Origin: Takakia lepidozioides
Taxonomy: Eukaryota; Plantae; Bryophyta
Reading direction: 5' to 3'
DNA: 64,000 nucleotides
Assembly: GCA_030704615.1 (NCBI GenBank)
Contig: CM060731.1
Location: 61,628,001 to 61,692,000 of the forward strand
Part shown: positions 2,006 through 38,388 of the stretch, in pieces
How the letters are laid out: every line of letters begins with the position of its first letter
How positions within the stretch are numbered: the stretch's first letter is position 1
The notes under the pieces: generated by a model
The model's input: only the letters and a program-made list of their open reading frames with translations
Databases searched by the model: none
Told to the model about the DNA's origin: nothing
Program-made: the position numbers and the translations under genes

Positions 2006-2804
2006 AACGCTGCCACGGATGGGCCTGTGGATTATTGAGCTAGGTTGTAAGTTCTTTCGGCCAAAGAGGATCTGGTTTTAGGTGGTATGTTTTTGGCGGT
2101 TTTGGGTCTCTATGGACATGGTGGCCTTGAATGATATGGCGGCAGCCTGATAATGCACCGACCTGCTCCTTTTCGGGCCTGTTTTTGATGAGTACTGGAT
2201 CATAGTGAGGTGTTCTTTGCATGCTTTAGCATGTAACTCTTGAAGGATGAGGATGGTAAGCTGCAATGGGATCCTACCTATAGTTTTGGCTTTGTCATGA
2301 CATCAGGCCTATGACTTGCAATCTGGTCTTTTTTATATGCAAAAGAGGCTGGATCTCGGTTGTTCAAGTTGCTTGTATGTACAAGTCTTGAACCTGCAAT
2401 TTGACAGGCTGAATTCACATTCCCTTGACACCTTATATGATCACATGTCTCGGGGTGAATATTTCATCATGCCCAAGTAGGACTGCTTGGTGACATATTG
2501 TGATTCTGACAAACTGCAGGCTGGTCCTTATGCCTTGGCTGATGCATGACCTGCCATAATTAATGGCTGAAAAGGTAAGCTGCTGCAACCCGTGGGTCAT
2601 GTCCAAGATGTATGTGTGAAAACGTGTCTTGAAATGGTAATAGGGTAGGCTGGACCATGGTACCTTGCCCTTTGCATGACCTCAGCACTTCTGTGCTCCT
2701 TCAATACATGACCTGCTGGTAAGGTATGTGTGCAGGCTGAACCAAGAGGCCTTGCAGCCTGCACAGGGGCAGCAAAATCTTATCTTGTCCAACACAAGAA
2801 CAAA

Positions 2805-2980
2805 CCCCGCCCTCCCACCCTGTTTTGTCTTGGATGATTGGGTGTTGTCATTTGGGATGATTTGACAAGACTGGAAGTGTGAGATAGTGCCCTATCAAGG
2901 GCTGTTTATGTCTTTAATTGACAATGACCCTTATGGGTCTTGTCCATGTCTTGACATGACGTGAATATCTTCCCACTCTC
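2805..2980 (+). repeat. ~175-bp dispersed direct repeat, copy 2
   Basis: Aligns to 1484-1659. Confidence 0.9.
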
Positions 2981-3664
2981 TTCCTTTTCCAGTGTACTTA
3001 GTGGTGTTTGTACACACTATCTACCATCCTTCCGTTCTTGTTATTTAATTACCAGTCTGACCTACTAACAAGGATTTTTATGGTCTGGCAGTTGGCCAAC
3101 ATATAAGTTCCTGTGTTGGAGGGGTGTACATCAAGTTCGCTTTGGGGCTTCAGTCCCTGGCCTCCACTTTTTCCAGCAATGCAAACTACCACTAGTCACG
3201 GCAAGTGACTTCAAGTACCAATATGCAAAGGTTGGACTCTGGAGTTTTGGAGGATTCTGAGAATCTCAACATACCGGAGGAAGGTTGCAGGCTGATTGAG
3301 ACCCACGCCCATGGCAGGAAATTCATAACTTATGCGGCGAAGCCTACCCCCTTGGGATTCATACATATGCTATACCCAAACCGAGGTATGGAATGGATCA
3401 GCCCTAAGAACCTGATTAAGGAAACTCTGGTGACTCATGCACAACTAGACCTGGCTCTCCTTGTTGATGAGATTATCTTTGGATGGACCTATCATAAACA
3501 ATACAGCACTGAATTTTACCAGCCTGCTGTTGTTTTTCGAGACTTCAACTAATTCATGCAAGATCTGATTATGTCCTCTAGTTGTCCCTCAGGAGGTAAG
3601 ACATCAGACTCCAGAAATGTAAGCAAGTCATCACTAAGAGCTAGAGTACGGAGTTTATCTTGAC

Positions 3665-6600
3665 TGTCCAAGGAAAATGTGGCTCAAACTTTGTGAGCAT
3701 TATGAAGTCAAGTCTATCTCCAGGAAGTTGCTAATCCGAAACCGTCTTGCTAACCTCAAAATGGAAGAAGGAACGACCATGGAATCATTCATGGAAATGG
3801 TGTCTGATCTTGTGAGCCAGCTTGCAGGATGTGGTGAGAAGATTGACGATACAATGCTGGTCGAAATGGTGCTTAACAGCTTACCCGAGAGTTACGACTA
3901 CTATGTGCAAGCAGTGGCAAGCCAAAAGGACCTACCAACCATGGACGAGCTCACTGCCAAACTGCTCCAGGAAGAAAATCGCAGAGAGCTAAGAGGCCGG
4001 CAACAGAAAGACACATAAGCTCTTTTCGTCAAGTTTCAAAAGATGGGGGCTCCCGGCAGACGTTTTGGTAACAAACGAGCTTTTGGACACACATCCCATG
4101 ACAAGAAGACATCAACCTGCAATCGATGTGGAAAGATCGGTCACTGGGCGAAGGATTGTGCAGTTCCATATGACGAAGTACTCAAACTTCGTGCACATCT
4201 GCAAGCCCATCTTGTTGAGGAGAACAGTGATAGTGAGTACAATGATGCAGCCGATGACATTGAAGTAGCTTTAGCGGCAGTAGAAATAGCAGACGAAGAT
4301 GAGGCCCTCTGTGCTGAGATCACCGAAGCAGAGTGGATTGTTAACTCTGGTGCTTCGAGACATATCACTGGAAATCCAGATCTGGTGCATGATGTAAGTA
4401 GCATCAGGAAGCTCACAACACAATGTTAGCTCTGCCGGTGGGCATGCACACACTGTTCTTGGCAAAGGCCATGCCAAGGTAAACATGAACGGATCAATAA
4501 CGAAGATATCTAATGTTCTTTACGTACCGAGTCTGAAGCGGAATCTATTTTCAGTCTGGAGCAATCTGTGATAGTGGTCACCTGGCTATCTTTGACAATA
4601 GAAAATGTTTGTTTGTAGATAAAAATAACACTAAGAGAATAGTAGCACAGGGATCTAGAAATAGGAGAAATGGCTTATATAATTTAGACACCAGCAGCTT
4701 TGTCAATTCTCTAGATTCCAGTAGAAAGATAGAAGCAAATGCATGTGAAGATATGCCTCAAATAGATCATGGTAGAGTCGCTAGACTCTGGCATAGCGAC
4801 TAGGACACTTAAATTTTCAAGGCCTTCACAGAATGTCCACACAACAAAGAGCAATAGGCTTACCTCATCTACCCCTCCTCGTAGAATCTTGCAGAGGCTG
4901 CTTGCTCGGTAAGCACCAACGAAAACAATTTTCGAAGAAAGCAGAACACAAGGCTACTGAAGTCCTTGAGCTGCTGCACATAGACCTTTGTGGACCGCTG
5001 CAAGTCCCATCTCTCTCAGGATCAAAATATTTCATGGCCATAACCGACGATTTTAGTCGATATACGTGGGTATATTTTCTGAGAAGAAATGACGAAGCAC
5101 TGCAGAAGTTCAAGATCTTCCGACAGATGATAGAAAATGCTACAGGGAAGACGATAAAGTGCTTACGCTCAGACCGTGGAGGCGAGTTTTTGTCTCACGA
5201 ATTTAGTGCTTACTTGCAGTCCCATGGGATTACACGACAGCTGACACAGCCTAGAACACCACAACAAAATGGTGTTTCCGAGCGCAAGAACCGCATGTTA
5301 CTAGAGAGAGCAAGAAGTATGGTTCTGGAGGCGGATCTTCCCAAATACTTGTGGTCAGAAGCTGTCAACACAGCTGCATATCTTCTCAATCGAAGTCCAT
5401 CATCTGCCAATGAAGGAATGACACCCTATGAAAAAATTTCAGGTATCAAACCCCGCTTATCTCATCTTAAGATATTTGGCAGCAAATCTTATGTTCGTGT
5501 TGACCAACAATACAGAGGAAAACTAGATGCTAAGTCAATAGTTTGCATGCTAGTGGGTTATGATACAGAAACCGAGGCGTACAGACTGTTCAATCCCACT
5601 ACTAGAAAAGTTTTTGTTAGTAGAGATGTTATATTCATTGAGAGGATTCCTGCACAAAGAGATATCCTTATATCAGAGAGACATTCAGTTTCACTCCAAG
5701 AGCAACATGAAGTAGACGATGTTGTGGTTCCAGACAATGTTGAGGTTCCACCCGTACATGTTGAGGTACCCAAACCCCTATCTCCCCGTGCTATTGATAT
5801 ACATGTTGACCTTGATATCGACTCTGAGAACAATCTGCCGATTGAGAGGGAATTACCTGTAGCTCATGTCAAGCTAGCACCTGAGCTACCAGCTCAACCT
5901 GATCCAGAACAAGAAATTCAACGTCAATAAAGGAGGATTCGACGACGGCCACAACTTCATGATGACTATGTCAACATTGCCGAGATCAATGAACCTGAGA
6001 GCTTCCATGAAGCTTCAGATTGCAGGGTGGCAAGATGCAATGCATTCCGAAATGGATTCAATTGCGAAGAACCAGACCTAGGAGCTGGTTGATTTGCCCT
6101 CTGGGAAAACCCCAATCACTTCGAAATGGGTGTATAAAGTGAAGCAAAAGGCTGATGGCTCACCTGATAAGTTGAAAGCGCGCCTTGTTGCAAGAGGTTT
6201 CCAGTAGAAAGAAGGCATAGACTATGACGAAACATTCGCTCCAGTTGTCAAATGGGCGACTATCCGCTCTCTTGTTGCCCTTGCAGCTCACATGGACTGG
6301 GAAATTGTTCACATGGACGTCAAAACGACATTCTTGAACGGGGATTTGTTCGAAGAGGTTTACATGCGACAGCTTGAGGGCTTCTCCAAGCTTGGCCATG
6401 AGACGAAGGTCTGTAGACTTTTGAAGGCCTTATACGGTCTTAAGTAAGCGCCGAGAGCATGGTATGCTAAAATTGACTCTTTTATCAAGACTCAAGGTCT
6501 TCACAGATCTAATGCTGACTACAACCTCTACTATTTCAAGGAAGATGATAAAATTGTTTTGTTAATTCTTTATGTAGATGACCTCTTGCTGACTGGCAAT

Positions 6601-7563
6601 CACAATGTGAAAATCGCTTGTCTGCGCCAGCAACTCAAGCAAGCATTTGATATGACCAATCTAGGCCTCATCACGCTGTACCTTGGAGCTGAATTTCTTC
6701 ACCTTGAGAAGGCATCATGATCACGCAGAGGGGGTATATTAAAAAAATGCTTGAGGAGTTTGGGTTTTCTGATTGCAATCCTCACATTCTTCCCATGATC
6801 GAGAACCTTAAACTTTCTATGGATATGGGCACTGCACCTTCTGATCAAACTCTATACAGGAGGAAAGTTGGCAAGCTAGTATACTTGACAAACACAAGAC
6901 CTAATCTTGTGTATCCTGTCGGAGCAGTGAGTAGGTACATGGAGTCGCCACAAACAGCTCACATGGATGTTGTTGATCACATTCTTCGATATGTGGCTGG
7001 AATAGTTGACTACGGGCTGTTATACAAGAGAGGAGTGAACATCGCTTTAAGTGGTTTCACAGATGCCGACTGGGCTGGCGATAATGATAGTCGACACTCA
7101 ACCTCAGGTTATGTCTTCAGAATGGGTGATGGTGCAGTAACTTGGAGTTCGAAGAAGCAACCTACCGTTGCATTGTCCTCAACAGAAGTCGAGTATCGTG
7201 CACTCACCAAGGGTGCTAAGGAGACAGTTTGGTTGAGAAGACTCTGTAAAGAACTCGGAATTTTAGAGGATGGTCCTACTGTTATAAGCTGTGACAATTA
7301 GAGTAGCGCAAAAATTGCTCACAACCCAGTATTTCACGCTCGTACGAAACATATCGAGGTTCATTACCATTATATTTGTGAGAAAGTGGAAAGCGAAGAA
7401 GTCGACTTGGTGCATGTTGCGTCACAAGAACAAGTTGCAGATATTATGACTAAACCTCTTGACAGACAGAAATTCGAGAAATTTAGAGCAGCTCTAGGTG
7501 TTTGCAATCTTTCGAAACTGAAGTGCAGAACCCTAGAAGAAAAATGTTGATATTGAGAGGGGG
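3665..7563 (+). mobile_element. Ty1/Copia LTR retrotransposon internal region, 5'-truncated and disrupted (gag-PR-INT-RT-RH)
   Basis: UBN2-type gag (LANLKMEEG, LNSLPESY), zinc knuckle CNRCGKIGHWAKDC, protease WIVNSGASRH (catalytic D to N), integrase HIDLCGP/TDDFSRY/RSDRGGEF/QQNGVSER, RT YVDD (~6570), RNase H GFTDADWAGD and TKHIEV, in Copia domain order; many stops and frameshifts; PPT TGAGAGGGGG at 7554-7563. Confidence 0.95.
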
Positions 7564-7860
7564 TGTTAGATTTAGAAAGCTATATCAACATGGTCCCACT
7601 AGGGTGACACCCTGCTTGCTTTATCTCTTCATTAAGTAAGAGTCATGGAGTTGGTAAGCATTAGCTGAATTCCAGCTAATCGGGTTTAGTGCCACCTACC
7701 GGCAATCAATGCTAGCTCTTAGATAAATAGGGAACCCGTTAAGGGTACTGTATTCCTGATGTTCCTCCTTAGTAAAGTATTCCAGTATGCTGAATCTATC
7801 TTCGTAACTGATTTTTTGGGGTGAACTAGCTCTGGTGAGGGTCCAGAAATCGGCTATCCG
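7564..7860 (+). repeat. Putative 3' LTR of the first Copia element (right boundary uncertain)
   Basis: Begins TGTTAG immediately after the polypurine tract; no 5' LTR is present in the window to define the end. Confidence 0.5.
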
Positions 7861-8064
7861 TGAAATATCCCTAGTTGGATTGTTGGATTGTCATGCTTCT
7901 TGCCAAAGATATTTCTTGGGGATGGATCAAAAGTAGCAGGGTTTCAGACAATGAATAGTAGCCATTAAATTAAAAAAATGAATCCCCAACGTGAACACTC
8001 ATGGGAGCTAGGAAACTATAGAACTTCCTAGTAAATCTTCAAGAGGAAAAGATCCAATCTCAAC

Positions 8065-8369
8065 TTGCCAGCCCACCAAGTTGAGAAGAATAAAAGATCT
8101 CAGGGTATGACCTTGCGGCAAAATCTCGTCCGCGGCCTAAGTATGTACCTCGCCATCGCATTTTCTCTTTCATAACAAAGAGTTGAAAAGAAATCAACGC
8201 CTTGGTATCCTAGTTGGCTTTCCAGTTTTGTACAAAGCAGCCAATTCTTTGATATTCACAGAAACGACGTTGGTGTGAAATCTTTTTGCAGCACTTTGCC
8301 CTATCACTTGAAAGCAGGTTTCTCGACCAGACCTCGGACAACGTCTTTGATTTCATTCTGTGGATCATT
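8065..8369 (-). pseudogene. Decayed paralogue of exon 1 of the NTF2-like gene at 11014-11928
   Basis: Manual minus-strand translation gives NDPQNEIKDVVRGLVEKPAFK**GKVLQKDFT...IKELAALYKTG...GYQGVDF...ENAMA...LRSFILLNLV, versus ENPKKEIKDVVRGLVCNPTLKQQAEVIQKYFT...MKNLTTIYHIG...RYQDVDF...ENAMA...LRIFVLLKLV in the intact gene; stops, frameshifts and a deletion are present. Confidence 0.88.
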
Positions 8370-11013
8370 GTATTGAACATCACCTCTTGTAGATTGCATG
8401 TACCGAGAGAATCTTGACAAAAAGGTCCAAAATTTTATTGACAAATAACCCGATATTGGGTGCCCGTAAGTTGCGGATTGCAAGAACTAGATCTAGATAT
8501 GCTAGAGAGGAGACCACTAAAAAAGTAAAACCACCTTGTAGTCTACGTCACAGACATGCAACAACCTCCCAGAAATCTTAATGTGAAGGAAACCTCCGAC
8601 ACTACGTAGAGAGAGACACACTAGCAAATCAATATTTTAATTTAGATATATGATTAGCATTTGATCCCATTGCCTCCCGCTCATGTAACCATCCTCCTCA
8701 CTTGCATATACCCACTCATTTCTCTTCAGTTATAGGCGAGCAATTAGCTCACATCAGAATTATACTTACCTCTACAGCACTTTATTATATCGACCCTCCA
8801 GGATTCTTGGTAGGAAGTTTAGATCGAAATTGAACTACACTCCAACCGCAACAAATTAATTGCGTTGTACAGGGTGGTATCCGCCAATTTTTACACACCA
8901 ACACGTGTTGTTGGAGCGGGATTCCATGACTTTGTGGATACAAATTTCAGCGAGGGTACAAAAATCATTACATCGCACACGCATTCACAGTGCGGGGTGT
9001 GGTGTGAATTGGAACATGTCAAGTCCCAGATTCTTTATCTAATGTATGCGACGGTGACAAAGGTGTGCAACCAGGTTTACATGCATGTTAGACTAGTCGA
9101 TTGATGTGTTGTCATGTGGATTTTGTAGATCTCGCGCCCCTTGCCATAACTTTCTTGATCTTGGTCCGATTAAAGGGACCACAAAAGGGAAGATTGCAGT
9201 CCAGATTGAGGGCTTTCTAGAACTTTATAGGCCAAAAGGGTGACTCAATGCCCAAAATCTCTGAAGTCTCTGCACACAGACACCCTTGGCAAGTTATAGA
9301 CTCGGTACCCCAAAAGCTTGCCCAAAAATTCTGAACATTTAGGGATCGAGACTGTACATTTCACTTTTGTTATACAAAGGGCTCCTTGACCAGTATGGAG
9401 CTTAATATGTGGTAAGTTTGGCGCAAAATTTTGCTTTCCCAAAATTTGGGGCTTCCTGGTATGTGAATGTTTGTTGAGGATCTCATCTGGTAATTAATTA
9501 AAATATTATTTAAATATCTAAGAGTCAGAGATCATCAGTTTACCCTCACGGACAAGATTTCAGTCTCTTAATGTGGAAGGATAGACAGATTTCGTTGGAT
9601 CGAACCGGCTACTACAAGGCAATGCACAACATGGAAGGTGGATCCTTCGAATATTTCATATTTCTTCTTCCGTGACGAGGCAGCAAGAAGTTTCCTACAT
9701 CATTGTCTTCAAAGGAAAGCAATCTACAGTGAAAATTGGAGTTATTGGTTTGTAGATTCACGTATTATGTTCGACTAATCTTTTTATTATATTACAAGTT
9801 AATATTCCTATTGTATTCTATGTATTCAATGATCTATTTTCTACTATATATTTGTACTACACAGAAAACTATGATATTTTTGGCATAAAATTGGAAACTT
9901 GTTTCATGTTTCTTTTCATTTTTCATACCAGATGTATACTATCATACTATGTCATGTAAGCTCAAACTGTTACCTACCAGATATGTAAGACCAAAGAGTA
10001 GAAACAGACTTGTTTTGAGGGTACAGGTGCAGAAAACATTTGATATTGTTTCTCATTCTCATTATCATCAACTAGGAACAATCAATACTCATCCTCTAAA
10101 ATCTCACCTTTGAAGCACCAAATGAAGAATTGACTCACTTGTGCCTACCCTACTAGTAACTCCAATTATATGACATTTGTGTCTGAGATAGACTAATAGA
10201 CAACAACCTCTGAGTATGATACCCACATAATGTGCGTTACGGATCTGCAAAGAAAGCTGAAGAGAAACTAGAACCTGTGAGGTAGGTCCTTAATTCTAGA
10301 TCAAGTTTGAAGCTTCCTTATGCTCTTTGCCACACCCAATAAACACATAGATATTAATGTGTTGGGTCACTGACTTGAGGGCACCTACTAAGTATTATTT
10401 CATGAAACAAATAACAAAATTTCTATCCCAATATTCATGGCAAAACATATTACATCAATATGCACAACACAGTTTAAAAAAAAAAGAAGAACAGTTTTTT
10501 TAAAACAGTTCTACTTACAAAATAAATAAAATTAGAGTCCCAAATCTTGAGGAGGGTTATTTTTTAAGGTCCAACGAAGAGTGTGTGTGAGCAGCAACTA
10601 CTGGCAGGCTAGAAACTGAGCACCCCGGAGCAGTTGGGTTTTATACATGTGAGATTACTTCTCGCAGTAGTGGCAAGCCCTCAAGAATGGGACACCATGT
10701 ACTGTACCCTCTTCTACTCTGTTTCCTTTCTATCTACATCCATGAATCAGCTCTATCAGGCCGCTGATCCCTGGGAATGGCTGAGCCCTCAAACGTCAAG
10801 GCATGTACAGTCACAGGTCTAGGATCAGTCTCGAGAAAAACTGGTGTTGAGAATTTGTAAGAAATAGCTCCATGACCATCCCTGCCGACTCCAGTGAGCG
10901 GCTCGTCACCACAGTTAGGATCAGTCTCCCGACCCAGAGACTTCCTTTTGAAGTTCACTATCCCGTGACTTGAGAGTGATCGCCAAAGGAGGAGGATGGA
11001 GATCATGCCATAC

Positions 11014-28207: not shown

Positions 28208-31200
28208 TCATGCAGCTGCAACCAAGTTTGAGAGAAAGGGAGAAATTAACTCTTCTATCTCTCTCTTACTCTGGTGTGACCCCCCACCAATGCAGCTGTG
28301 TGCGCAAGCCCGTTGAGGATGTATTGCCACCATGCCTTCAAAGCCACTCCACTTAGATTTAGTCGAATCAGCATCGCTTGCTGGCCTCTCAGATCCTAAT
28401 CTTCTATCCCATGTGTCGTCATCTTCCTCCGGCTTGAAGGCTTCATGCAATGCCTCAATCATCACATCGGGGTGACAGGGTTTGTCCGATGCTGCAAGCA
28501 TGTCTAGTGACCTATCTAGACTACGTTTCCTCTTTCCTGCACCCTCTTTGGGCAGCGAGCTATGGCTAACGACATACTCCAGGAACGTCTCAATTCGGTC
28601 AACCTCGGCTTCGACTAATTCTGCAGCCTCTACAAGTGGTCGAACTGTCTCGTTGTATAATTCTACCGCTCTCGCGGTGGCCTTGTGGGCCTCAAGTTTT
28701 GATTGTAGAATCTTTTCGTGCTTGACTCGCAGTTCTTCACAAAATGCAGCATGATTTACTCGTTCTGCTTCAACATCTTTCTCATATTCAGCCTCAGCTG
28801 CAATGCAAGCCTGCTTCCACTCAACCTTCTTCTTCTTCACGATCTCCTCATTCATCTTCTCCACCACCTCCTTTGCGGCCTATCATCATCCAGACCTCTT
28901 TTCAGTGTTGTTGAAAACTCAAATAGGTTGCTCCAAAGCTTATCATGTATGTAGAGAATCATTTGTATTACTCGTGACATTGCAAAAGGTTATCTCGAAA
29001 AACCAAATTTCTACCTGGAGTGCAACTCGTCGTGCAGCCAAATTTTGATTTTCCTCTTGGACTTGCTTGGTCTTAGCTTCCCACTCTCGGACCATGTTTT
29101 CTGCAGCAGCACGATTCTCGTGTGCAATAGTGACACAAGCTTGCTTCCACAATAACTTAGCTTGCTCCTCGGTCTTTTTGTTCAGCATTGTGATGTTTTG
29201 AATGTTAGCATCATGCTCTGCCACTGCAGCAGCCACTTGTTCTTGGTAAACAGCCTGTGCCGCCTCTTTCAACTGTGTCAAGCCCTCCAACTTTTGCGCA
29301 TACTCCAGCTTCCGCCTCTCGTTCTCAACTCTCACCTAAACATGGTCATTGCAGAGGCAGAGTCACCGGCGGGCTTCAGTACAACCAGCAATCCCTTACA
29401 TTCTTCTTGTTCGATATCTAAGAGAATTGAAGGGATAATTGCACAAAGAAAAGTGCACGGGTCCAAAAACAAACACACCTCTTCAGTCATCCTCGCAAAT
29501 CCATCCTCTACCTCCTTCATGCGACGAGCATTCTCCGCACGCACAACAAAACATTCTGCCTCATAATCAGCTTGCGCTTTCTCTACCATCAGCTCATTCA
29601 GTGCTCTTGTGGCCCCTACATCCTCCTCATACTTGAGATGCGCAGCCTCGTTGGCTGCTGCCACATTTGCTATCCTCTGCTCTTGTTCAATCTGCCTATT
29701 CACCTTTGCAGCTTCATTACTGGCCTTGATTTTCTCTACCTCCGCCTCGTACAATTCGTGCGTGTGCGACAACTTATATGCATTCCGTTCTTCCACACCT
29801 TTCACATCTTGTAAAAATCTCAACCGCCCCTCCCTCTCCTCTTGCTCTTGTTTCTTCTTCACCTCCACCACACCTTCCTCCCAAATCTTGTATACCTCGG
29901 ATGCATTCTCGTTCAATTTGTGGACTTTCTCAACTTCTTGCCTCCAAAGTGCGCGAGCCTCCTCCATTATCATACTATTGCGCTCCGTGATAAGCGTCAC
30001 ATTCTCTTCATACGAAATGCGTGCCTTCACACAACCATACATCAACAAAATCATAACACGATACAAGCACAAATACTTACATTTCTCTAATTCCTTACAA
30101 GCGTTTCATTCCAATATCGGTTTGTGCATTTTTAACAGGAATGTTACCTGCATCAAAAGACGCTCCTTCTCGGCCCGAAAAGAGTCGGACTTGGTCTTGT
30201 ATTCGCCCAATGCCACTTGTTCTTCGCGCAAGTAGGCCGCCAAGCGAGGGGCCCCCCTCTCTTCCTCAAATTGATCCTTCACTCTGTTCAAAATCTCTTG
30301 GATGTCTTCCATCCGACCCTGCTCGGCGTGGCGCCTTTGGTCAGCCTCTATTTTATTTTGGGCCCAAATTCTATCATTTGTGTTATCCGTGGAACTATAT
30401 ACAGGGGGCTTTGCGGGCCATTGGATATCCATTTCTTTAAATTGGCCACCGGTTTCGGTCGCTATTCGCTTTAAGAAGCGTTGCCCGGCTTTGGTAGAGG
30501 CTATCCCGATGGGGTTTATAGAAATCATTCGACCTTTCTCTTTCGCCAACCGCTTTAACATGCTTAATATCTGTCACAAGGACAACAATGAGAATATAAT
30601 AAGAGTGATTTATATATATTTTCAGAAAAGGGGATCGACGTAGGTCCATTGATTTTATGGCACAAGTAAAACCCTTGATGAAGCGGTTGTTTCTGTGTGT
30701 ATGAATAATTGAATCTTCCAATGTTGTTAACCAGCAATTGGTTGTTAATTGTTTCTACAACTAAATATAAGTGACATTTGAAAAACAATAAAATTGGATG
30801 AATTGCCCAAGTAAGCAGTGGTGTCTCTTGTCTTCCGAGTACTCACTATTGCCTTCCTTTGTGACCTCTAACATGTTTTTTGAACCCACAACCACTGATG
30901 AACAGAAGATAATAGGAATAATGTAAGAACTTAACGCACACGTGCAAACCTCTGACAGAGTGGTACGCCACATTCCGGAATGTCAAATCTTCCCCACCCT
31001 CTCTTGAGAGTGACATGGGACTGAAGGAGTGTAAACTCCAGTCAGGGGTACACGACGAGGTATATAACTCCCCTTGGGGTACTCCGCTCGGTGTAACTCA
31101 CACTTGGTCTCTAAATTGGCTAAGTATAAAATGGACTAACCGGAGTTACATGAGAGGGTTGCACAGGGTTACACAAAGTTACATGAGAGACCAGGGTTAC

Positions 31201-34200
31201 AGAGGGTTACATGGGTTACACTACAAGAGCCTCCCATCAAGAATTGAACCCAGAATCTTGCCACCTGCAATGCTATCGCCTTACCGGCACACTACCCACT
31301 ACAACTAAAAACTCAATTGATAGTGAAACCGAGGTAAGAGGGGGTGGGAAGGATTTGACAAGGGCCCAGCCAGGGGAGCCCAGGCTGCCCGGAATCCGGC
31401 GAAAGTACCGTCAGATCGCACACGTCCCTTAAGTTCTTACATTATTCCTATTGTCTTCCCTGATGAACCGGTGCATATACCACTGGGCTAAATTGCTGTT
31501 GATATTGGACACAAATAGTGGCAGGGCTCGCACGCAGGTTTCTTCATAATTCACTAGAAAAATATTTATTCAGGATTTAATTTTAAGATTTTATGTTATT
31601 CTGTTTGACAAGTCTGATCTATAAATGAGTCGAATTTTAAGTAGGATAAATTATTTTACAAATATACATCTCATGGTTGTATGATGGCTGTGATACTTAT
31701 GTAGGATTAACTCATATCATCATACTTATTTACTGCAGTGCAGTCAAAGAGTATGGATCATATATTTTTTTGAGAGTATTTAATAATTTTTAAGTAAATT
31801 TAATTTTTGAAGAGTGTTATATTTATTCCAAAGTTTTGGAATTACCAATACAGGCTTGTCCGGCTTGCCATCAGTAAAAAGATAAATGCAATCGCAATTT
31901 CGTTGCATAGCAACTTCAATCGCTTTATACAAATTGGTGGTTCCCACAGGCCGCCACCTTAGCATCCAGGAGAGCGCGCTTTCCAAATTAAAATGCGTCT
32001 TTCCTTGCATTACCTACCCTAGGTCCCCCTCCAAGTATTTGAAACATTTGGAATCATATGTCTTTAATTTTGACTACAATATAATACTTATCTTAACTTT
32101 TAGTTTTATAATATCTATCACTTGCTTTTCGATGATATTGCAGGATTTTCATATAAATCATGGCAACATTAAGTCTTAAGTAAAAGAGAACAAATAATGC
32201 TCATTTTGAGATTAATGAATTCTTACAATCAAAAGGTATATAAATCGTTATCAGCTATCAGAAAGTTTGTCATATACAAAAGTTCATGATAGACTATATA
32301 CTTCAAGGTGTCAATCATAAAACAAGTGCTTAAAATATGTATAATCTTACGTCAATAGTTTTGGTCCAATAACGCATAGGTTCGCCTCTCAATTGTCGAA
32401 GCCTTTCCCTTTCACGAGTTCCGTAGCTCCATGCATCAAATGAATACATTATGATATCAAAGTGTGTTGCTGCAATCTCAACCTGCAACAATGTGAACCA
32501 CTACGTACTTTCATATATATCTAGAAACTATTCATTTGCTATAAAGTGCTTAATGTATATATGTATGCATATATATCACCCAATACAGCCCACCCCCAAA
32601 AGGGGGCAGTAGCCGCGAGGCGAAGTGGCTCTTAGTTACACCGCTTCGGCCGGAGTCTTCTCTCTCTATATCAAGCAATAGATACTTTATGATAACTACA
32701 TGTAATATTCCCTTTATTACATTTGAAGTCACTGAACATGACATATAGTCCAATTACAAATTAATTTGAGATAATCGTGTGAAAACAAGTAATAGAAGTT
32801 ACAATTCAGCCATAGATAGTAATTAAGTTCCACTCACTTGTCCGCCATGGTTGAAAAGAGCTTGCAAGCAATTGCCGACAACCTTCATGCGCTCACCTGC
32901 CATTGTGCCGCTACAATCAATCAAAAACACCGGCCGTTGTCCTTGCAAATATCCTACAGGCTCCGGGGGCAGTGGAGGAATGAAACGTGGAGTCAGGGGC
33001 TTGGAGGGGGGCTTATACAAAGGTTCCTTGCTCAAAGAAAGTGGTTCAAACACAGGGACTATTTCTAGTGTTGGAGGCTCAAATTTGGGTTCAGCAACAA
33101 ATTCTTGGACTGGATGAGGAGGGAGCAAAATTCGGGGTGGTGGTTTGGCTAAGCATGGCAGAGGCGGTGCATTTTCTGGTTGGAAAATCTTGGGTGGCTG
33201 ACAGGCTCCATCACAAATGACTCCTCCATTGTCTTCGTCCGCGACATAATAGTACGAAGATTCACAAGGCCGGACCTCAAGTACGGGAGGCCGAGACAAA
33301 GGTATGATATCTAACAACGCGGGAGGAAGAATTTCTGGTTCCAAAGGCACGGGCCGCGGGGGAAGAGGCAATAGGGATGGCGACTCAAACACGGGCAAAG
33401 ACAATTGCTCTGGAATCGTAAACACGGGGGCAGACACTTCTTTGTACAAATTGTGGTCAATAGCTTTCTCTTCGTCTGCAAAATTTTGCATTACGGGGAG
33501 CTTCAAAATTGGGGCTTTGATCAATGTGGGTGGGATATACTTGGGTTGTTCTTTGCGCGTGGGTGTGCAAAGGAGAGGCAAGAATGAATCCTCGGGGATT
33601 TCGACATCCGAAATTGTGAGCAATCCTTCGATAGGGTAAAGTTGGAGCAAAGATTTTTGTGGGGGATGGATAAATTCGGGAATCGGTTCCAACTTAGGGA
33701 GCTTCCAAATAGGCGTCTCCTGCAATATTTCGATGAACGAAAAATGTAGTGTATTAAAATTTAACATTTGATTAAAGATCAGATTCTTACAAATCAAAAC
33801 AAATAATAATGAATTCAAATGTTTGGATTGTGGAATATACCTTATATGTGGTGGTGCTCATTTGACCTTGTAACCGATTCAAGAGACCACGTAAATCACT
33901 AATGAGTTGCCGCAAAGAGGCCCGGTATGAGCCATGGATTTGGCGACCGTTGGGAAGCAAAAAATGCCCAAAGAACCCATCGCAATACTTTGCATGCACA
34001 TGTTTGTTGTCTTCCTATACACCACTTGCCCACTCACACAATCACAACAATATGATGCTGCAAAAAGTATATGTCATATATGCTTTTGAATGAAGTAATG
34101 TTCCAATTTTGCATAAAGTTTGTTTTCATCATAGATCTCTCTATATAGATAAATTCATGAAATATGTATTAATCACATTAGTACCTTGTTCTTTGACCCA

Positions 34201-35179
34201 TGACAGTGGTCAAAATATATCCAACTTTGCATCAACACGTCCATCAAACTTTTTGGAAGCTGTTTGTTGCGCTTGCTTTTTCTTCGGACCAGCTATTAAA
34301 AAAATTTGTCACACAACCTAAGCATGCTCAATAAACATTCTTTTTTTCGAACTATATGGGATATACATTTTCCATAATAAAGAACAAAGGTCATAAATTG
34401 AATTGAGTTTCTATAGTAAAGTAGCCCTCAAAATTTTGAAAAAGGAAAGAAGTTATACAAAAACAAAGCTTAACAAAGCTTATAGAATATATTTTAATAT
34501 TTTCTATTGGACAACTTAGCTTCCATATAGTTTATGTTTTTGGCATGGATTTTTTTTTATGGGTGTCTGTGAAAAATATTTTAGGCAAGTTCATTTCAAT
34601 ATTATCATGTGTGAGAATAGGATGTACCTTCATGACAAATGCTCCATCTGCCAATTGTAGAGCAGCACTTGGTATTGCACTACCTTTAGAGGCATCCATG
34701 GAAGAAAATTGAACATCCTTGGAGTTTCTGTCAGGCTTTCCCCACACCGCATGGATCAACTCCAAAGGAAGCTCTCCTTTTCTTGCCTTACGATTTTTTT
34801 TGTCTCCTTGGAGTTCTCGCATCTTGTCGTTCAACCAACTCCATTCTTTTGCTAATTTAGAGAACGCACGTTTGTTTCTAGGGTTTGAAAGATTAAGAAA
34901 TTCTTGTTCTAATTTGTCATTTGGTGGGTTAGAATGTCCTGCTGCATTGTTCTGTACTGCCTCATTCTTTTGTCTTTGATGTGGTTGTTGTTGTGGATGT
35001 CTTCCACGTGGAGTGAAGCCATTGTCATTAGGTTTTTTTGCCTCCACATGGATTCTTGGACTGTGGAGTGGCTTTTGTATCATCCTTTTCTCCTTTGTAA
35101 GCTCAAACTTCTCAATATTGGCGAAGAGGATTTGAGATAGCTCACGCAAAGCATCTTCTTGCCACCCAATTGGTGCCAT
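28208..35179 (-). CDS. ~1320-aa protein: N-terminal region, Pro-rich tract, VWA domain, long Ala/Glu-rich helical repeats; exons 35179-34628, 34292-34185, 34014-33841, 33719-32838, 32482-32351, 32013-31852, 30570-30148, 30024-29479, 29335-29015, 28879-28208
   Basis: Ten exons join by GT-AG into one open frame. VWA/MIDAS motifs VFLIDCSGTM, GTTNLYKAI, CIYLFTDGKP, INPIGI and FLKRIATETGGQF are present. The start codon and the exon-6 acceptor are less certain. Confidence 0.8.
30981..31360. mobile_element. 380-bp intronic insertion with TG...CA ends and ~25-bp terminal inverted repeats (solo LTR or MITE)
   Basis: TGTCAAATCTTCCCCACCCTCTCTT ... AAGAGGGGGTGGGAAGGATTTGACA; internal GGTTAC/GTTACA repeats and a TATATA box. 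Confidence 0.75.
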
Positions 35180-38100
35180 GAGCAAAGTATTATGTTTTAC
35201 TCTTTTTTAGCTTGTTTGTGAATAAGTTTCACAGAAATTATATCACATTTTGTCTCTCTTCCCATATTTGAAATTAGAATAACCACCTCATTGTAACCCA
35301 TTAAAGAGAATATTATCCATCTACATGACCCTCATGCTGGAAGATGCATGTAAGAATCTGTCACTTATGAAACTTCTCTAATTTGGAACCCTAAGAAACA
35401 TCTCATACAAAAAATGTAAGGTTTAATCCTCATTGGCACCAGTACTTTGATGACTTTATCTACATACTTCCTTTTCCATGTAATTTTTTTCTTTCGAAAA
35501 TGTTACATTTGCACAACAAGAATGAGATAATCAAACTGTGTTATTTTATGTTTTATGTTATTTGTACCTCCCCAAATAGCTCTGAGCCCACAATGTAATG
35601 GACCACTAGTTCTTTGCATTTGGTCTTTCATATTTTCCCAATAATTAGGTTATTTGTATATCAACAAGATTAATGTTTGGTGACACATGTTAGGTCAAAG
35701 TTTGTTTTGTATGAGCCAGTTAGATATGATAAGATTGGGTCTTACGAAATATTGATAAGACAACATCTTTCAATTTAAATAATATACTAGGAACATTCAT
35801 TTTATAGTTTGGGTTTGACAAGCCATAATCCTTTTATCTGAAGAAAATAGTATTAATCAGATATTAAGCTTAAGTAGAAATGGAGAAGTAGGGATCATAG
35901 CCACTCAAAGCGGGCCATCAATTCGACAATTTCTTTTATGGAGGAAGGAAGAAAGTTTCATAAAATAAAACACTGTGCTTAGACAAAACTAATTTTGAGA
36001 CAAATTTGTAGCCAACAAGAAATTATGGATCATTGCACAATGTAAGTAATGTCTAAATAAGATAATGTCAATTAAGTTGGAACACTTTAATCTTCTCTCT
36101 CATAAAAGTTATTTTGACAAGTTGACTAGTACTTCTTGACTCAGATCATTGCATCACTACAAGGTGGATATCATCTTTCAATTGAGCATGTATACAACAC
36201 GGAAAATTAAATTACACAAATCTCCATTTCTTCACAATCAAAAGCCATATTAACTTAGCTAGCTTAAAAGCAAGATCCGAAGATTGAATATGGTAATGGA
36301 TTGAGATGAAACTCAAAGTTTATTCCCTCGAGACTCGAGAAAAAGATAAAGGAACAAAGACCACCAGTCAGTAGCGTAGTTGAGTAGAGAACTAAAGGCC
36401 ACCCAAGTTCAAATCTTGTTACATAATTAAATGTTGTGAAATTTTGCTCCAATCCTCTATTTTAATCATATTGATGATTATTTTTGTCAGGTTATTATTT
36501 TATATATAATTCATGCTATAAAATCAATGATATCTACACTATAATTTACATCCTCTAAGATTTAATAGAATTTTCTGAAGAAACATTAAAATTTAAAATA
36601 TTTGTAATATTTGTTCATCTTGTCAATTTTTTAATTATGACGTGGTGGCCCGGTATATAGATATGTGTATATATATATATATATATATATCGAAAGACTT
36701 AAGCTTTTCATCTTAGTACAGTATAATCATCCCCTTTCAACAAAATTGTGACCTAGTCACCAAAGGACCACATTGTTGAAACCACTATAGAAAAAAATTG
36801 TTTAATTTAAATGTAAAAATTGTGAATTTTGAGAGGAAGCATGTTGTCAATCAGCTATATCTTAACCAGGAGTTATATAGCTTAAAGATGGAGGAAGGAA
36901 ACTCAGTGCAAGATCAAGCTCCAAATCATTAGTGATCATTTGTCCAGCATTGGTCATCGAGTTTCAGATGAAGATCTGACATTTATTCTTCTTGGAAGTT
37001 TGTCACCTTCATATCAGACATTGGTAGTATCTCTTGGTACACATACTAGCGGTCTGATTATGGACCTAGTTACAGGACAATTATTGCAAGAAGAGATGTG
37101 TTGCAAACGAGAGAATCATGTCTTCGGTAGAAGTCAGGCTACAATGGCATTGAATATCAAGACTTCAGGAAGTTCAAAGTCTTATAAGGCAATGGTTAAT
37201 TTTGCAAAGAAATGGACTAAAATCAAGAAGAAGAAACATGGAGCCTGTTTCTTTTGTGGCATGAGAGGTCACTATGCACGTGACTACTTCAATAAAAAGC
37301 TAGACGATGAGAAGAAGAAGAGGTTTCAAAATGAGGTTTCAGCATTGGCTGAAAGGACTGAACTTCTTGTTGTAGCTTTGTCAATCTCTACGAGTTGCAG
37401 AGATGCATGGTTCATTGATTCAGGGGCATCTCAGCACATGACATTCCAGAAGGAAGCATTCTCAACCTTCAAAGAACTCTTTGTGGGACACAAGGTGTAT
37501 CTTGGAGACAGCAGTACTAGTCTTGATATCCATGGAAAATGTACTGTTGTGTTTCAATTATCATCTGGAGTGTCGAAGGAGATCGGAGGAGTTCTCTTTG
37601 TTCCTGGATTGACAAAGAACCTATTGTCAGTTAGTCAGCTAACTGAGCAAGGTCTTACGGTTGAATTTTCTACCAATCATTGCTGGATAAAGTTTGACAG
37701 TGAAGTGATAGCTGAGGTAGTGAAAGATGCAAGATTGTACAAGCTAATGGGGGTTGTCCAGGCTTTACATGCGGAGTGTACTACTACGCTCAAGCAGAGT
37801 GACCTCTGGCATCAGAGACTTGGAGATGTCTCAATGCAAAGTTTGGTATACATGTCAGCTAACAATCTGGTTAAGGGCATGGATCTTACAGGAGATCGGA
37901 TCTTGAGTTTTTGTGACGGATGTGTATACGGTAAACACCATCGCAACTCATTTTCAAAGGATGGAGGTTCGCGAACAAATAAGATTCTTGAGCTGGTTCA
38001 TACAAATCTATGCAGTCCTATGTCAACTGAATCTCATGGAGGTGCAAAGTATTTCTTGACCTTCATTGATGATTTTTCCAGGAAAATATTTCTCTACACG

Positions 38101-38388
38101 ATGCAAAACAAGTTTGAAGTTCTTGATAGGTTCAAGGCATTCAAAGCTTTGGTGGAGAATCAAACTGGAGAAAAGATCAAAGCTCTTCGGTGTGATGGTG
38201 GTGGTGAGTACATCTCAAAGAACTTTAACCAGTTATGTAGGGAGAATGGTATTGTGAAACAATCAACCACACCATATATGCCAGAATAGAATGGAGTTGG
38301 AGAGAGGAAGAATCGAACACTTGTTGAGAGTGTGAGGTGTATGTTGCAACACATGAGGTTGGACCACCGTTTCTGGGCAGAAGCAGTG

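Follow-up and report, generated by a model that had tools for sequence, protein, structure and literature searches.

Can a plant protein build a stalk in which a polyproline-II (PPII) strand is zipped along a long α-helix? The question is raised by a gene of the bryophyte Takakia lepidozioides that lies in a 64,000-nucleotide stretch of contig CM060731.1 (assembly GCA_030704615.1, positions 61,628,001 to 61,692,000), hereafter the window. The gene runs on the minus strand from 35179 to 28208. It has 10 exons, seven of them delineated from the list of open reading frames (ORFs) and the reverse complement, and a product of 1,325 amino acids with no internal stop codon. From the N- to the C-terminus, this product consists of an N-terminal domain, a 260-residue Pro tract containing a four-Cys knot, a VWA domain, a 474-residue helix and a C-terminal domain. 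A preliminary description of the locus likened the protein to a mirror image of the streptococcal antigen I/II adhesins. We find that an α/PPII hairpin is the best-supported reading of the layout, although it is only partly supported: the Pro arm and the helix, whose repeats match in length, probably zip into a rigid stalk that bears the VWA head. As an explanation of the whole, namely, such a hairpin stalk with a VWA tip in an uncharacterised family of land plants with motile sperm, we hold this with somewhat better than even confidence. Throughout, searches were made with single exons of the window or with database orthologues, whereas structures were predicted for the Selaginella orthologue, the window exons serving as separate rows of the alignment. 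All parts of the gene given below lie on the minus strand.

A long helix with an aromatic/Asn seam

The helical region (28568..30378, introns included) extends through exons 7–10 and comprises 474 amino acids. This length is fixed in orthologues: it is found in all nine that cover the region (475 in Riccia), without any other indel and at 33–41% identity. Exons 8 and 9 are entirely free of Pro, and E, K, R and Q make up 40% of their residues. Exon 8 has four copies of the motif A-x3-[YWF]-x10-N where 0.08 would be expected (none of 2000 shuffles reaches four), and six of the looser [YWF]-x10-N compared with 0.63 expected from shuffles of the same exon. The nearly Pro-free A-x-x-x-[YW]-x(10)-N repeats that had been described are thus real, and all the peptides quoted at that time are present in the minus-strand exons.

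The hydrophobic period, 3.63–3.64 residues in nine orthologues, is that of hendecads and not of heptads (ideal values 3.67 and 3.5, respectively). Position a of the hendecad is Asn in 43% and Tyr, Trp or Phe in 33% of cases, positions e and h are hydrophobic or small in 69% and 79%, and the remaining positions are mostly charged. Furthermore, a conserved Asn recurs every 22 residues (71, 93, 115, 136, 158, 180, 202, 220, 242, 264, 311, 333, 355, 376, 420 and 442), each time preceded by an aromatic residue 11 positions earlier. Because of the hendecad period and this 22-residue spacing of Asn and aromatic residues, the helix, as far as can be read from its sequence, bears a narrow, nearly straight seam on which aromatic residues and Asn alternate every 16.5 Å. 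AlphaFold2 predicts two very long helices, of 144 and 293 residues, with a predicted local distance difference test (pLDDT) score of 70–88 and a break after the fifth aromatic/Asn unit.

When a profile of the helix was compared with the PDB, apolipoprotein A-I was the best match (E 0.016) and no antigen I/II chain was found even at E 10; phmmer searches of the PDB with exons 7 and 8 gave no match. The apolipoprotein match reflects the shared 22-mer rhythm only. As the top PDB profile match with a common 11/22-mer periodicity, it nevertheless brings up the explanation that the 22-residue units, like those of apolipoproteins, are amphipathic helices covering the surface of lipids or membranes. 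Indeed, both proteins are made of tandem 22-residue units of two 11-mers. However, the seam of the plant helix is narrow and rich in Asn and aromatic residues, with an apolar face of only ~3/11 positions and Asn at about half of the a positions, and no Pro punctuates the units (0% Pro). Since the match is marginal and concerns periodicity only, with no sign of homology, lipid coating appears very improbable.

A proline tract in step with the helix

The Pro tract (32943..33719) has 259 amino acids, 22% of them Pro, and runs directly into VFLIDCSGTM, the first VWA strand with the DxSxT motif of a metal ion-dependent adhesion site (MIDAS). This agrees with the ~260-residue PxxP tract ending at a MIDAS-bearing VWA domain that the preliminary description had put forward. 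Exon 4, which encodes the tract, is 20% Pro overall and contains 10 PxxP and 14 PP. In comparisons between lycophytes, ferns and Ginkgo, the tract is 41–51% identical, which equals the level of the VWA domain and exceeds that of the helix. Moreover, 29 columns are invariant in eight sequences, the four Cys among them, and the length stays within 259–264 residues except in ferns, where a single conserved 40-residue non-Pro insertion ~14 residues after the Cys knot is the only large indel of the tract. On this conservation, the tract is not a loose linker.

The strongest spectral period of Pro in the tract is 5.6 residues. A period of 5.3 residues had been derived from the helical repeat before the spectrum was computed, and 5.4–5.6 residues is the global spectral maximum in six of the seven orthologues (each of the six with P ≤ 0.005 in comparison with shuffles; the sequences are homologous and the P values thus not independent). 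In every orthologue, the last 55 residues before the VWA domain carry five aromatic residues in a row, exactly 11 apart. In the window, these five 11-residue repeats (32931..33095) have F, F, Y, F and Y at exon-4 residues 213, 224, 235, 246 and 257, in the contexts KFEPP, VFEPL, LYKPP, RFIPP and GYLQG, and are proposed to be the PPII arm of the proximal stalk. The four-Cys knot precedes them (33153..33266; exon-4 C152, C169, C173 and C189; RPCE..YY...CDG.C...PC.AK). It is invariant in all orthologues and represents a putative zinc knuckle and stalk hinge.

The rise per residue is 3.1 Å in a PPII strand and 1.5 Å in an α-helix. With these values, one 11-residue Pro repeat spans 34 Å and one 22-residue helical unit 33 Å, whereas the Pro period of 5.4 residues corresponds to 16.7 Å and one hendecad to 16.5 Å. 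The five VWA-proximal Pro repeats would measure 170 Å as PPII, compared with 165 Å for the five aromatic/Asn units of the first long helix. By these estimates the lattices of the Pro tract and the helix are commensurate, with five units on each side. The Cys knot falls opposite the break that AlphaFold2 predicts in the helix, and the fern insertion is close to the same point. The remaining 152 residues of the Pro tract correspond to ~470 Å and the 293-residue second helix to ~440 Å.

We suggest the following arrangement. The Pro tract would run back from the head as a PPII strand, antiparallel along the helix, so that each 11-residue Pro repeat with its one aromatic residue sits on one 22-residue helical unit with its one aromatic residue and one Asn. 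The two strands would together form a rigid stalk with the VWA head at its tip and the N- and C-terminal domains together at its base. The four-Cys knot, lying opposite the helix break, would be the hinge that joins a ~17-nm proximal segment to a longer distal one. Such a rod, probably at work in developing spermatozoids, could set the distance between a protein-binding VWA head and its anchor.

Structure prediction and the coiled-coil alternative

AlphaFold2 was run on two constructs of the Selaginella protein. The sub-construct (residues 405–900, starting at the Cys knot and including the first 190 residues of the helix; 21 alignment rows including window and metagenome exons) gave five models that are alike, with a mean pLDDT of 67–70. 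In these, the Pro repeats (model residues 51–110) reach a pLDDT of 78–90 while being neither helix nor strand according to DSSP, and the facing helix (residues 351–440) reaches 87–93. A 60-residue extended segment predicted at this level would be packed in a defined way, and its partner would be the long helix because nothing else is long enough to hold it. The best whole-model matches found by VIA-align are antiparallel two-armed hairpins, namely, the chemoreceptor 2ch7 (252 residues over model residues 1–480) and PrgA 6z9l (263 residues over 1–496), with further hairpins in HlyD 5c21, Tsr and the antifreeze protein Maxi 4ke2 (over 57–427). These matches align more residues than the helical arm alone contains.

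By contrast, in the full-length run (Selaginella Pro tract to C-terminus, 1,036 amino acids, 16 alignment rows) the entire Pro tract has a pLDDT below 45 and only helices are formed; VIA-align on this model returned only generic long helices, with a root-mean-square deviation (rmsd) above 40 Å. This result is one of several that speak against the hairpin. As the difference between the two runs shows, the outcome is sensitive to the choice of construct and to the shallowness of the alignment. The hairpin matches of the sub-construct are weak (Z 5–6.4, rmsd ~8 Å), and the proposed contact of the Pro segment with the helix is deduced from the ranges that they cover and from pLDDT. The N-terminal ~150 residues of the Pro tract are less regular and have low confidence in the prediction, and the lack of independence among the periodicity tests has to be counted here as well. 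Finally, Asn at core position a sets the register in dimeric coiled coils, and an Asn in this position is the classic register setter of the parallel ones.

The position-a Asn points to another explanation, in which two (or more) copies of the helix associate, parallel and in register, as a hendecad coiled coil. The VWA heads would lie side by side at one end, and the Pro tract would be an extended arm of its own, with conserved short motifs by which other proteins are bound. The core of such a coiled coil would be composed of Asn–Asn and aromatic layers. A period of 3.63–3.64 with an a/e/h core is typical of right-handed or unsupercoiled coiled coils, the PDB matches of the long helix are coiled coils, and the full-length model, with its long confident helices and disordered Pro tract, agrees with this arrangement. 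However, a narrow seam in which about half of the a positions are Asn, with ~18 consecutive polar layers, would make a weak stand-alone coiled coil. This arrangement also leaves unexplained the higher conservation of the Pro tract compared with the helix, its fixed length and its 11-residue aromatic repeat commensurate with the 22-mer, as well as the pLDDT of 78–90 of the extended segment. We thus consider a coiled coil with a free Pro arm unlikely, though it deserves to be taken seriously. The α/PPII hairpin in reverse order, as originally proposed, stands in part: the commensurate 11:22 repeats, the conserved Pro tract, the confidently predicted extended segment and the hairpin matches argue for it, whereas the full-length prediction does not.

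Analogy to antigen I/II

In antigen I/II, the helix of the A-region and the PPII strand of the P-region intertwine; Tyr residues of SpaP lock into PxxP pockets, whereas in BspA an Asn seam does the bonding between helix and PPII (PMC7732690). The plant protein, as predicted here, shares with these adhesins (SpaP/P1, SspB, BspA) a long helix paired with a Pro-rich strand, the head between them and the termini at the base. The ratio of about two helical residues per Pro-tract residue is also common to both, and so is an aromatic and Asn seam, the plant helix combining the SpaP-type Tyr/aromatic residues with the BspA-type Asn. The differences are as numerous. Antigen I/II has the order helix–head–Pro, a lectin-like V domain as its head, repeats of 39 (P-region) and 82 (A-region) amino acids, and a signal peptide and LPxTG anchor, whereas the plant protein has the order Pro–VWA–helix, a VWA head, repeats of 11 and 22 amino acids and neither signal peptide nor anchor, its C-terminus being ...SNLVAAA. 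In addition, the plant protein is eukaryotic, its Pro tract is interrupted by the four-Cys knot, and its stalk is predicted, whereas that of antigen I/II has been solved.

No sequence or fold match to the A-region, V domain or P-region of antigen I/II was found with Pfam (on exons and orthologue parts), the PDB profile, Foldseek, VIA-align or Atlas. On the sub-construct, the latter three returned VWA domains and hairpin shapes and no antigen I/II; Foldseek in particular, which had been suggested as a check for this likeness, gave VWA domains and never antigen I/II. Membership in the antigen I/II family is ruled out by the lack of homology, the reversed order, the VWA head, the different repeats and the missing anchor. 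The mirror-image relationship has therefore to be given up, and since no match in sequence or fold was detected, the likeness is convergent: the plant protein does not belong to the antigen I/II family but may, by analogy, work like its members.

A PPII strand that folds back on an α-helix, with prolines interdigitating with aromatic residues, is also known from the PP-fold of avian pancreatic polypeptide and neuropeptide Y. The PP-fold has 36 residues and one turn of contact, whereas the plant arrangement would repeat this 5 to ~20 times into a rod. To our knowledge, no eukaryotic or intracellular extended α/PPII fibril has been known before, such fibrils having been found so far only in Gram-positive adhesins. 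If the proposed structure is correct, the stalk would be the first eukaryotic and the first intracellular example, reached by convergence. Moreover, its simpler 11:22 register would offer a clean model of how the zipper is encoded and possibly a building block for protein design.

The VWA head

The VWA assignment is based on several comparisons. PF00092 scores 28.2 bits in Selaginella (residues 520–710) and 26.5 bits in Ginkgo, only just exceeding the cut-off of 23.8. Foldseek finds the VWA domains of ITIH1, CLCA1 and ANTXR1 with probability 0.96–1.0, VIA-align matches VWA structures with Z 5.3–6.2 over model residues 116–294, and Atlas returns VWA_3/VWA clusters. Like the VWA domains of ITIH1, CLCA1, ANTXR1/2, TFIIH p44 and RGLG2, the plant domain has a Rossmann-like VWA fold, and the window protein carries the DxSxS/T...T...D MIDAS in complete form, namely, D-C-S-G-T (32904..32918, at the end of the first VWA strand), GTTN and TDG. 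Unlike in those proteins, the flanking domains are unique to the plant family. Furthermore, the MIDAS residues have been lost in ferns: three sequences from Adiantum and Ceratopteris have DCGSAM in place of DCSGTM and SEGKAD in place of TDGKPD. Metal binding is therefore not essential to the family. The metal-binding rod envisaged in the preliminary description may thus apply to the window protein, judging from its intact motif, but not to the family as a whole.

A family of land plants with swimming sperm

An exhaustive HMMER search with exon 8 against 1.84 billion representative proteins gave 12 matches at 28–44% identity, 11 of which represent true relatives. These were found in Selaginella, Diphasiastrum, Adiantum, Ginkgo (two genes), Riccia and Calypogeia; among them are also a protein represented only in a Logan assembly and a pair of short ORFs, one on a plant contig in a metagenome and the other from Logan contigs only. 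Word-indexed protein searches, each with at least three to six family members among the matches listed, added Adiantum capillus-veneris and two Ceratopteris genes (KP509_13G000600 and KP509_09G016200). All named sources are land plants with swimming sperm, and the exon-8 scan of the 1.84 billion representative proteins contained no match from an angiosperm, conifer, gnetophyte, alga or animal. In the databases, the relatives are labelled 'hypothetical' or 'VWFA domain-containing', and a literature search with eleven orthologue identifiers found no paper that names a family member, in line with the earlier statement that no such plant protein had been described. The family is thus unnamed and uncharacterised, and its known range is limited to land plants with motile sperm.

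Angiosperms on the one hand and the conifer/gnetophyte line on the other lost flagella independently, a history that is mirrored in genes for spermatozoid structures (bioRxiv 10.1101/2021.07.25.453666). Among predicted proteins, the family shows the phyletic pattern of such genes, being confined to lineages with flagellate sperm and lacking in angiosperms, conifers and gnetophytes. It resembles BLD10 in this respect, which is present in bryophytes, lycophytes, ferns and Ginkgo, absent from angiosperms and conifers, and fast-evolving (bioRxiv 10.1101/2021.07.25.453666). However, BLD10 is a basal-body protein of ancient origin, with orthologues in algae and animals, whereas the plant family has no detectable relative outside land plants. 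From this distribution we infer a possible role in spermatid or spermatozoid architecture. Two points count against it: Marchantia and Physcomitrium are absent among the matches to predicted proteins, and the taxon pattern is that of annotated or predicted proteins and one exon query rather than of genomes. The previous guess at a link to sperm agrees with the taxon distribution.

The same distribution is open to a further explanation, in which the helix and the Pro tract, instead of binding each other, each dock on an external periodic structure of the spermatid (the microtubule spline, the multilayered structure or a basal-body fibre) and the protein is a ruler or cross-linker. A length of 474 amino acids fixed for >400 million years is typical of lattice rulers, the taxon pattern points to spermatozoid structures, and many axonemal proteins are among the matches of the long helix, though these are generic. 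Yet a period of 11/22 residues (1.65/3.3 nm) is out of step with the 4/8 nm lattice of tubulin, no homologue was found in Chlamydomonas, animals or any solved axoneme, and docking on an external lattice gives no reason for the two internal periods to match. Docking on such a lattice is, in our view, improbable.

Returning to the α/PPII stalk, a bolder proposal is that land plants independently evolved the zipper as a hinged intracellular rod of up to ~70 nm, a spermatozoid-specific spacer that was lost together with swimming sperm. We regard this as a plausible but tentative extension, to which we give less than even credence. Under this proposal, the rod might reside in the multilayered structure, the spline or the basal-body linkage. 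As far as we know, the multilayered structure and the spline have almost no known protein components, and the list of genes tied to plant spermatozoid architecture is very short. The family is an unnamed, plant-specific candidate for this list, testable in Ceratopteris, liverworts and T. lepidozioides.

The window's own protein has no entry in the databases searched and is about equally distant from all lineages. Its closest relative found is on an AT-rich plant contig of metagenome assembly ERZ12298641 (positions 2108–9991 of the contig), which has a similar exon layout, one extra intron in the equivalent of exon 8 and an adjoining aquaporin (MIP) gene; its source is probably a bryophyte of the sampled habitat. 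In Selaginella, a second copy or fragment, XP_024517048.1, has been automatically named 'WEB family protein At5g55860-like', a name that is an artefact of coiled-coil composition. In the gene model of Riccia and in a Logan transcript contig without introns (positions 1–2620), the VWA domain begins at the equivalent of exon 5, and the Pro tract and the first VWA strand are missing; the Logan contig has an in-frame stop two codons ahead of VEVAATHFD. The shortened start could reflect a short isoform, a 5′ end left unspliced or a faulty model.

Gene structure and transcripts

All nine introns are GT–AG and in phase 0, and each of the 10 exons is a multiple of three. Exon 1 (34628..35179, 184 amino acids) begins with the ATG at 35179, carries a conserved KEWSWL...RKGELPLELIHAVWG motif and has a 3′ border that is the least certain of the model. 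Exons 2 (34185..34292, 36 amino acids, motif LMDVLMQSWIYFDHCH) and 3 (33841..34014, 58 amino acids, motif KHVHAKYCDGFFGHFLLPNGRQIHGSY) complete the N-terminal domain. Exon 4 (32838..33719, 294 amino acids) encodes the entire Pro tract and the first strand and helix of the VWA domain, which continues in exon 5 (32351..32482, 44 amino acids, VEIAATHFDIIMYSFDAWSY) and exon 6 (31846..32013, 56 amino acids), the latter supplying the MIDAS Thr (GTTN) and Asp (FTDGKPD). Exon 7 (30148..30570, 141 amino acids) contains the last VWA strands and, from about residue 65, the start of the helical region. This continues as a hendecad helix through exon 8 (29479..30024, 182 amino acids), with its A-x3-[YW]-x10-N units, and exon 9 (29015..29335, 107 amino acids), both with 0% Pro, up to about residue 104 of exon 10 (28208..28879, 223 amino acids and the stop codon). 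The rest of exon 10 is the conserved C-terminal domain, with the motifs YNETVRP.VEA... and IHP.R..H.C. Both terminal domains are conserved but belong to no known family according to Pfam on orthologue parts and, for the N-terminal domain, the ESM Atlas. Pfam gave no match with single window exons, which are too short to score, and a feature-based ESM Atlas search with exon 8 gave no usable lead.

Several observations support the model. The seven exons delineated earlier have exact GT–AG borders, and the motifs of the three upstream exons (35179–34628, 34292–34185 and 34014–33841) align with the N-terminal domain of orthologues. In alignments with database proteins, the window exons tile consecutively onto orthologues with zero gap or overlap, and colinear full-length proteins exist in Selaginella, Ginkgo, Adiantum, Ceratopteris, Riccia and others. 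Two low-depth public runs of unspecified tissue cover the locus, with a depth of 3–9 on exons. In one of their contigs the junction of exons 8 and 9 (29479|29335) is joined exactly, with 143 nucleotides skipped between GT and AG on the minus strand, and at least this junction is therefore spliced in RNA. Two contigs extend from exon 10 into the preceding intron and have the appearance of DNA or of RNA before splicing. The gene, with its 10 exons, is intact and transcribed, and the original view of the exons as a single gene is confirmed. Because all introns are in phase 0 and all exon lengths are multiples of three, the reading frame of 28208–35179 would survive the skipping of any exon.

In no exon is a 19-residue segment hydrophobic enough for a signal peptide or transmembrane segment (maximum Kyte-Doolittle value 1.01), as had been noted before for the signal peptide. 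Without a signal peptide or an LPxTG anchor, the protein is cytosolic, as judged by sequence features alone.

Intron contents and surroundings

Two intron stretches, 32588–32667 in intron 4 and 30909–31053 in intron 6, are covered by many unrelated contigs, at a depth of up to 225 compared with 3–9 on the exons. Because the covering contigs continue into unlike sequence, these stretches are dispersed repeats, similar to miniature inverted-repeat transposable elements (MITEs) or short interspersed nuclear elements (SINEs). ARAGORN detected no tRNA-like or tRNA-derived part in them, the large intron included. The G+C-rich middle of intron 6 contains a degenerate 10-bp tandem repeat at 31155–31221 (AGGGTTACAC, 7 copies). 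The coding part is without DNA tandem repeats, and the protein repeats are therefore old and diverged. On the plus strand, ~1.8 kb upstream of the start codon, a 449-amino-acid ORF (36940–38289) has a translation resembling the gag-integrase part of Ty1/copia-type elements and bounds the possible promoter region.

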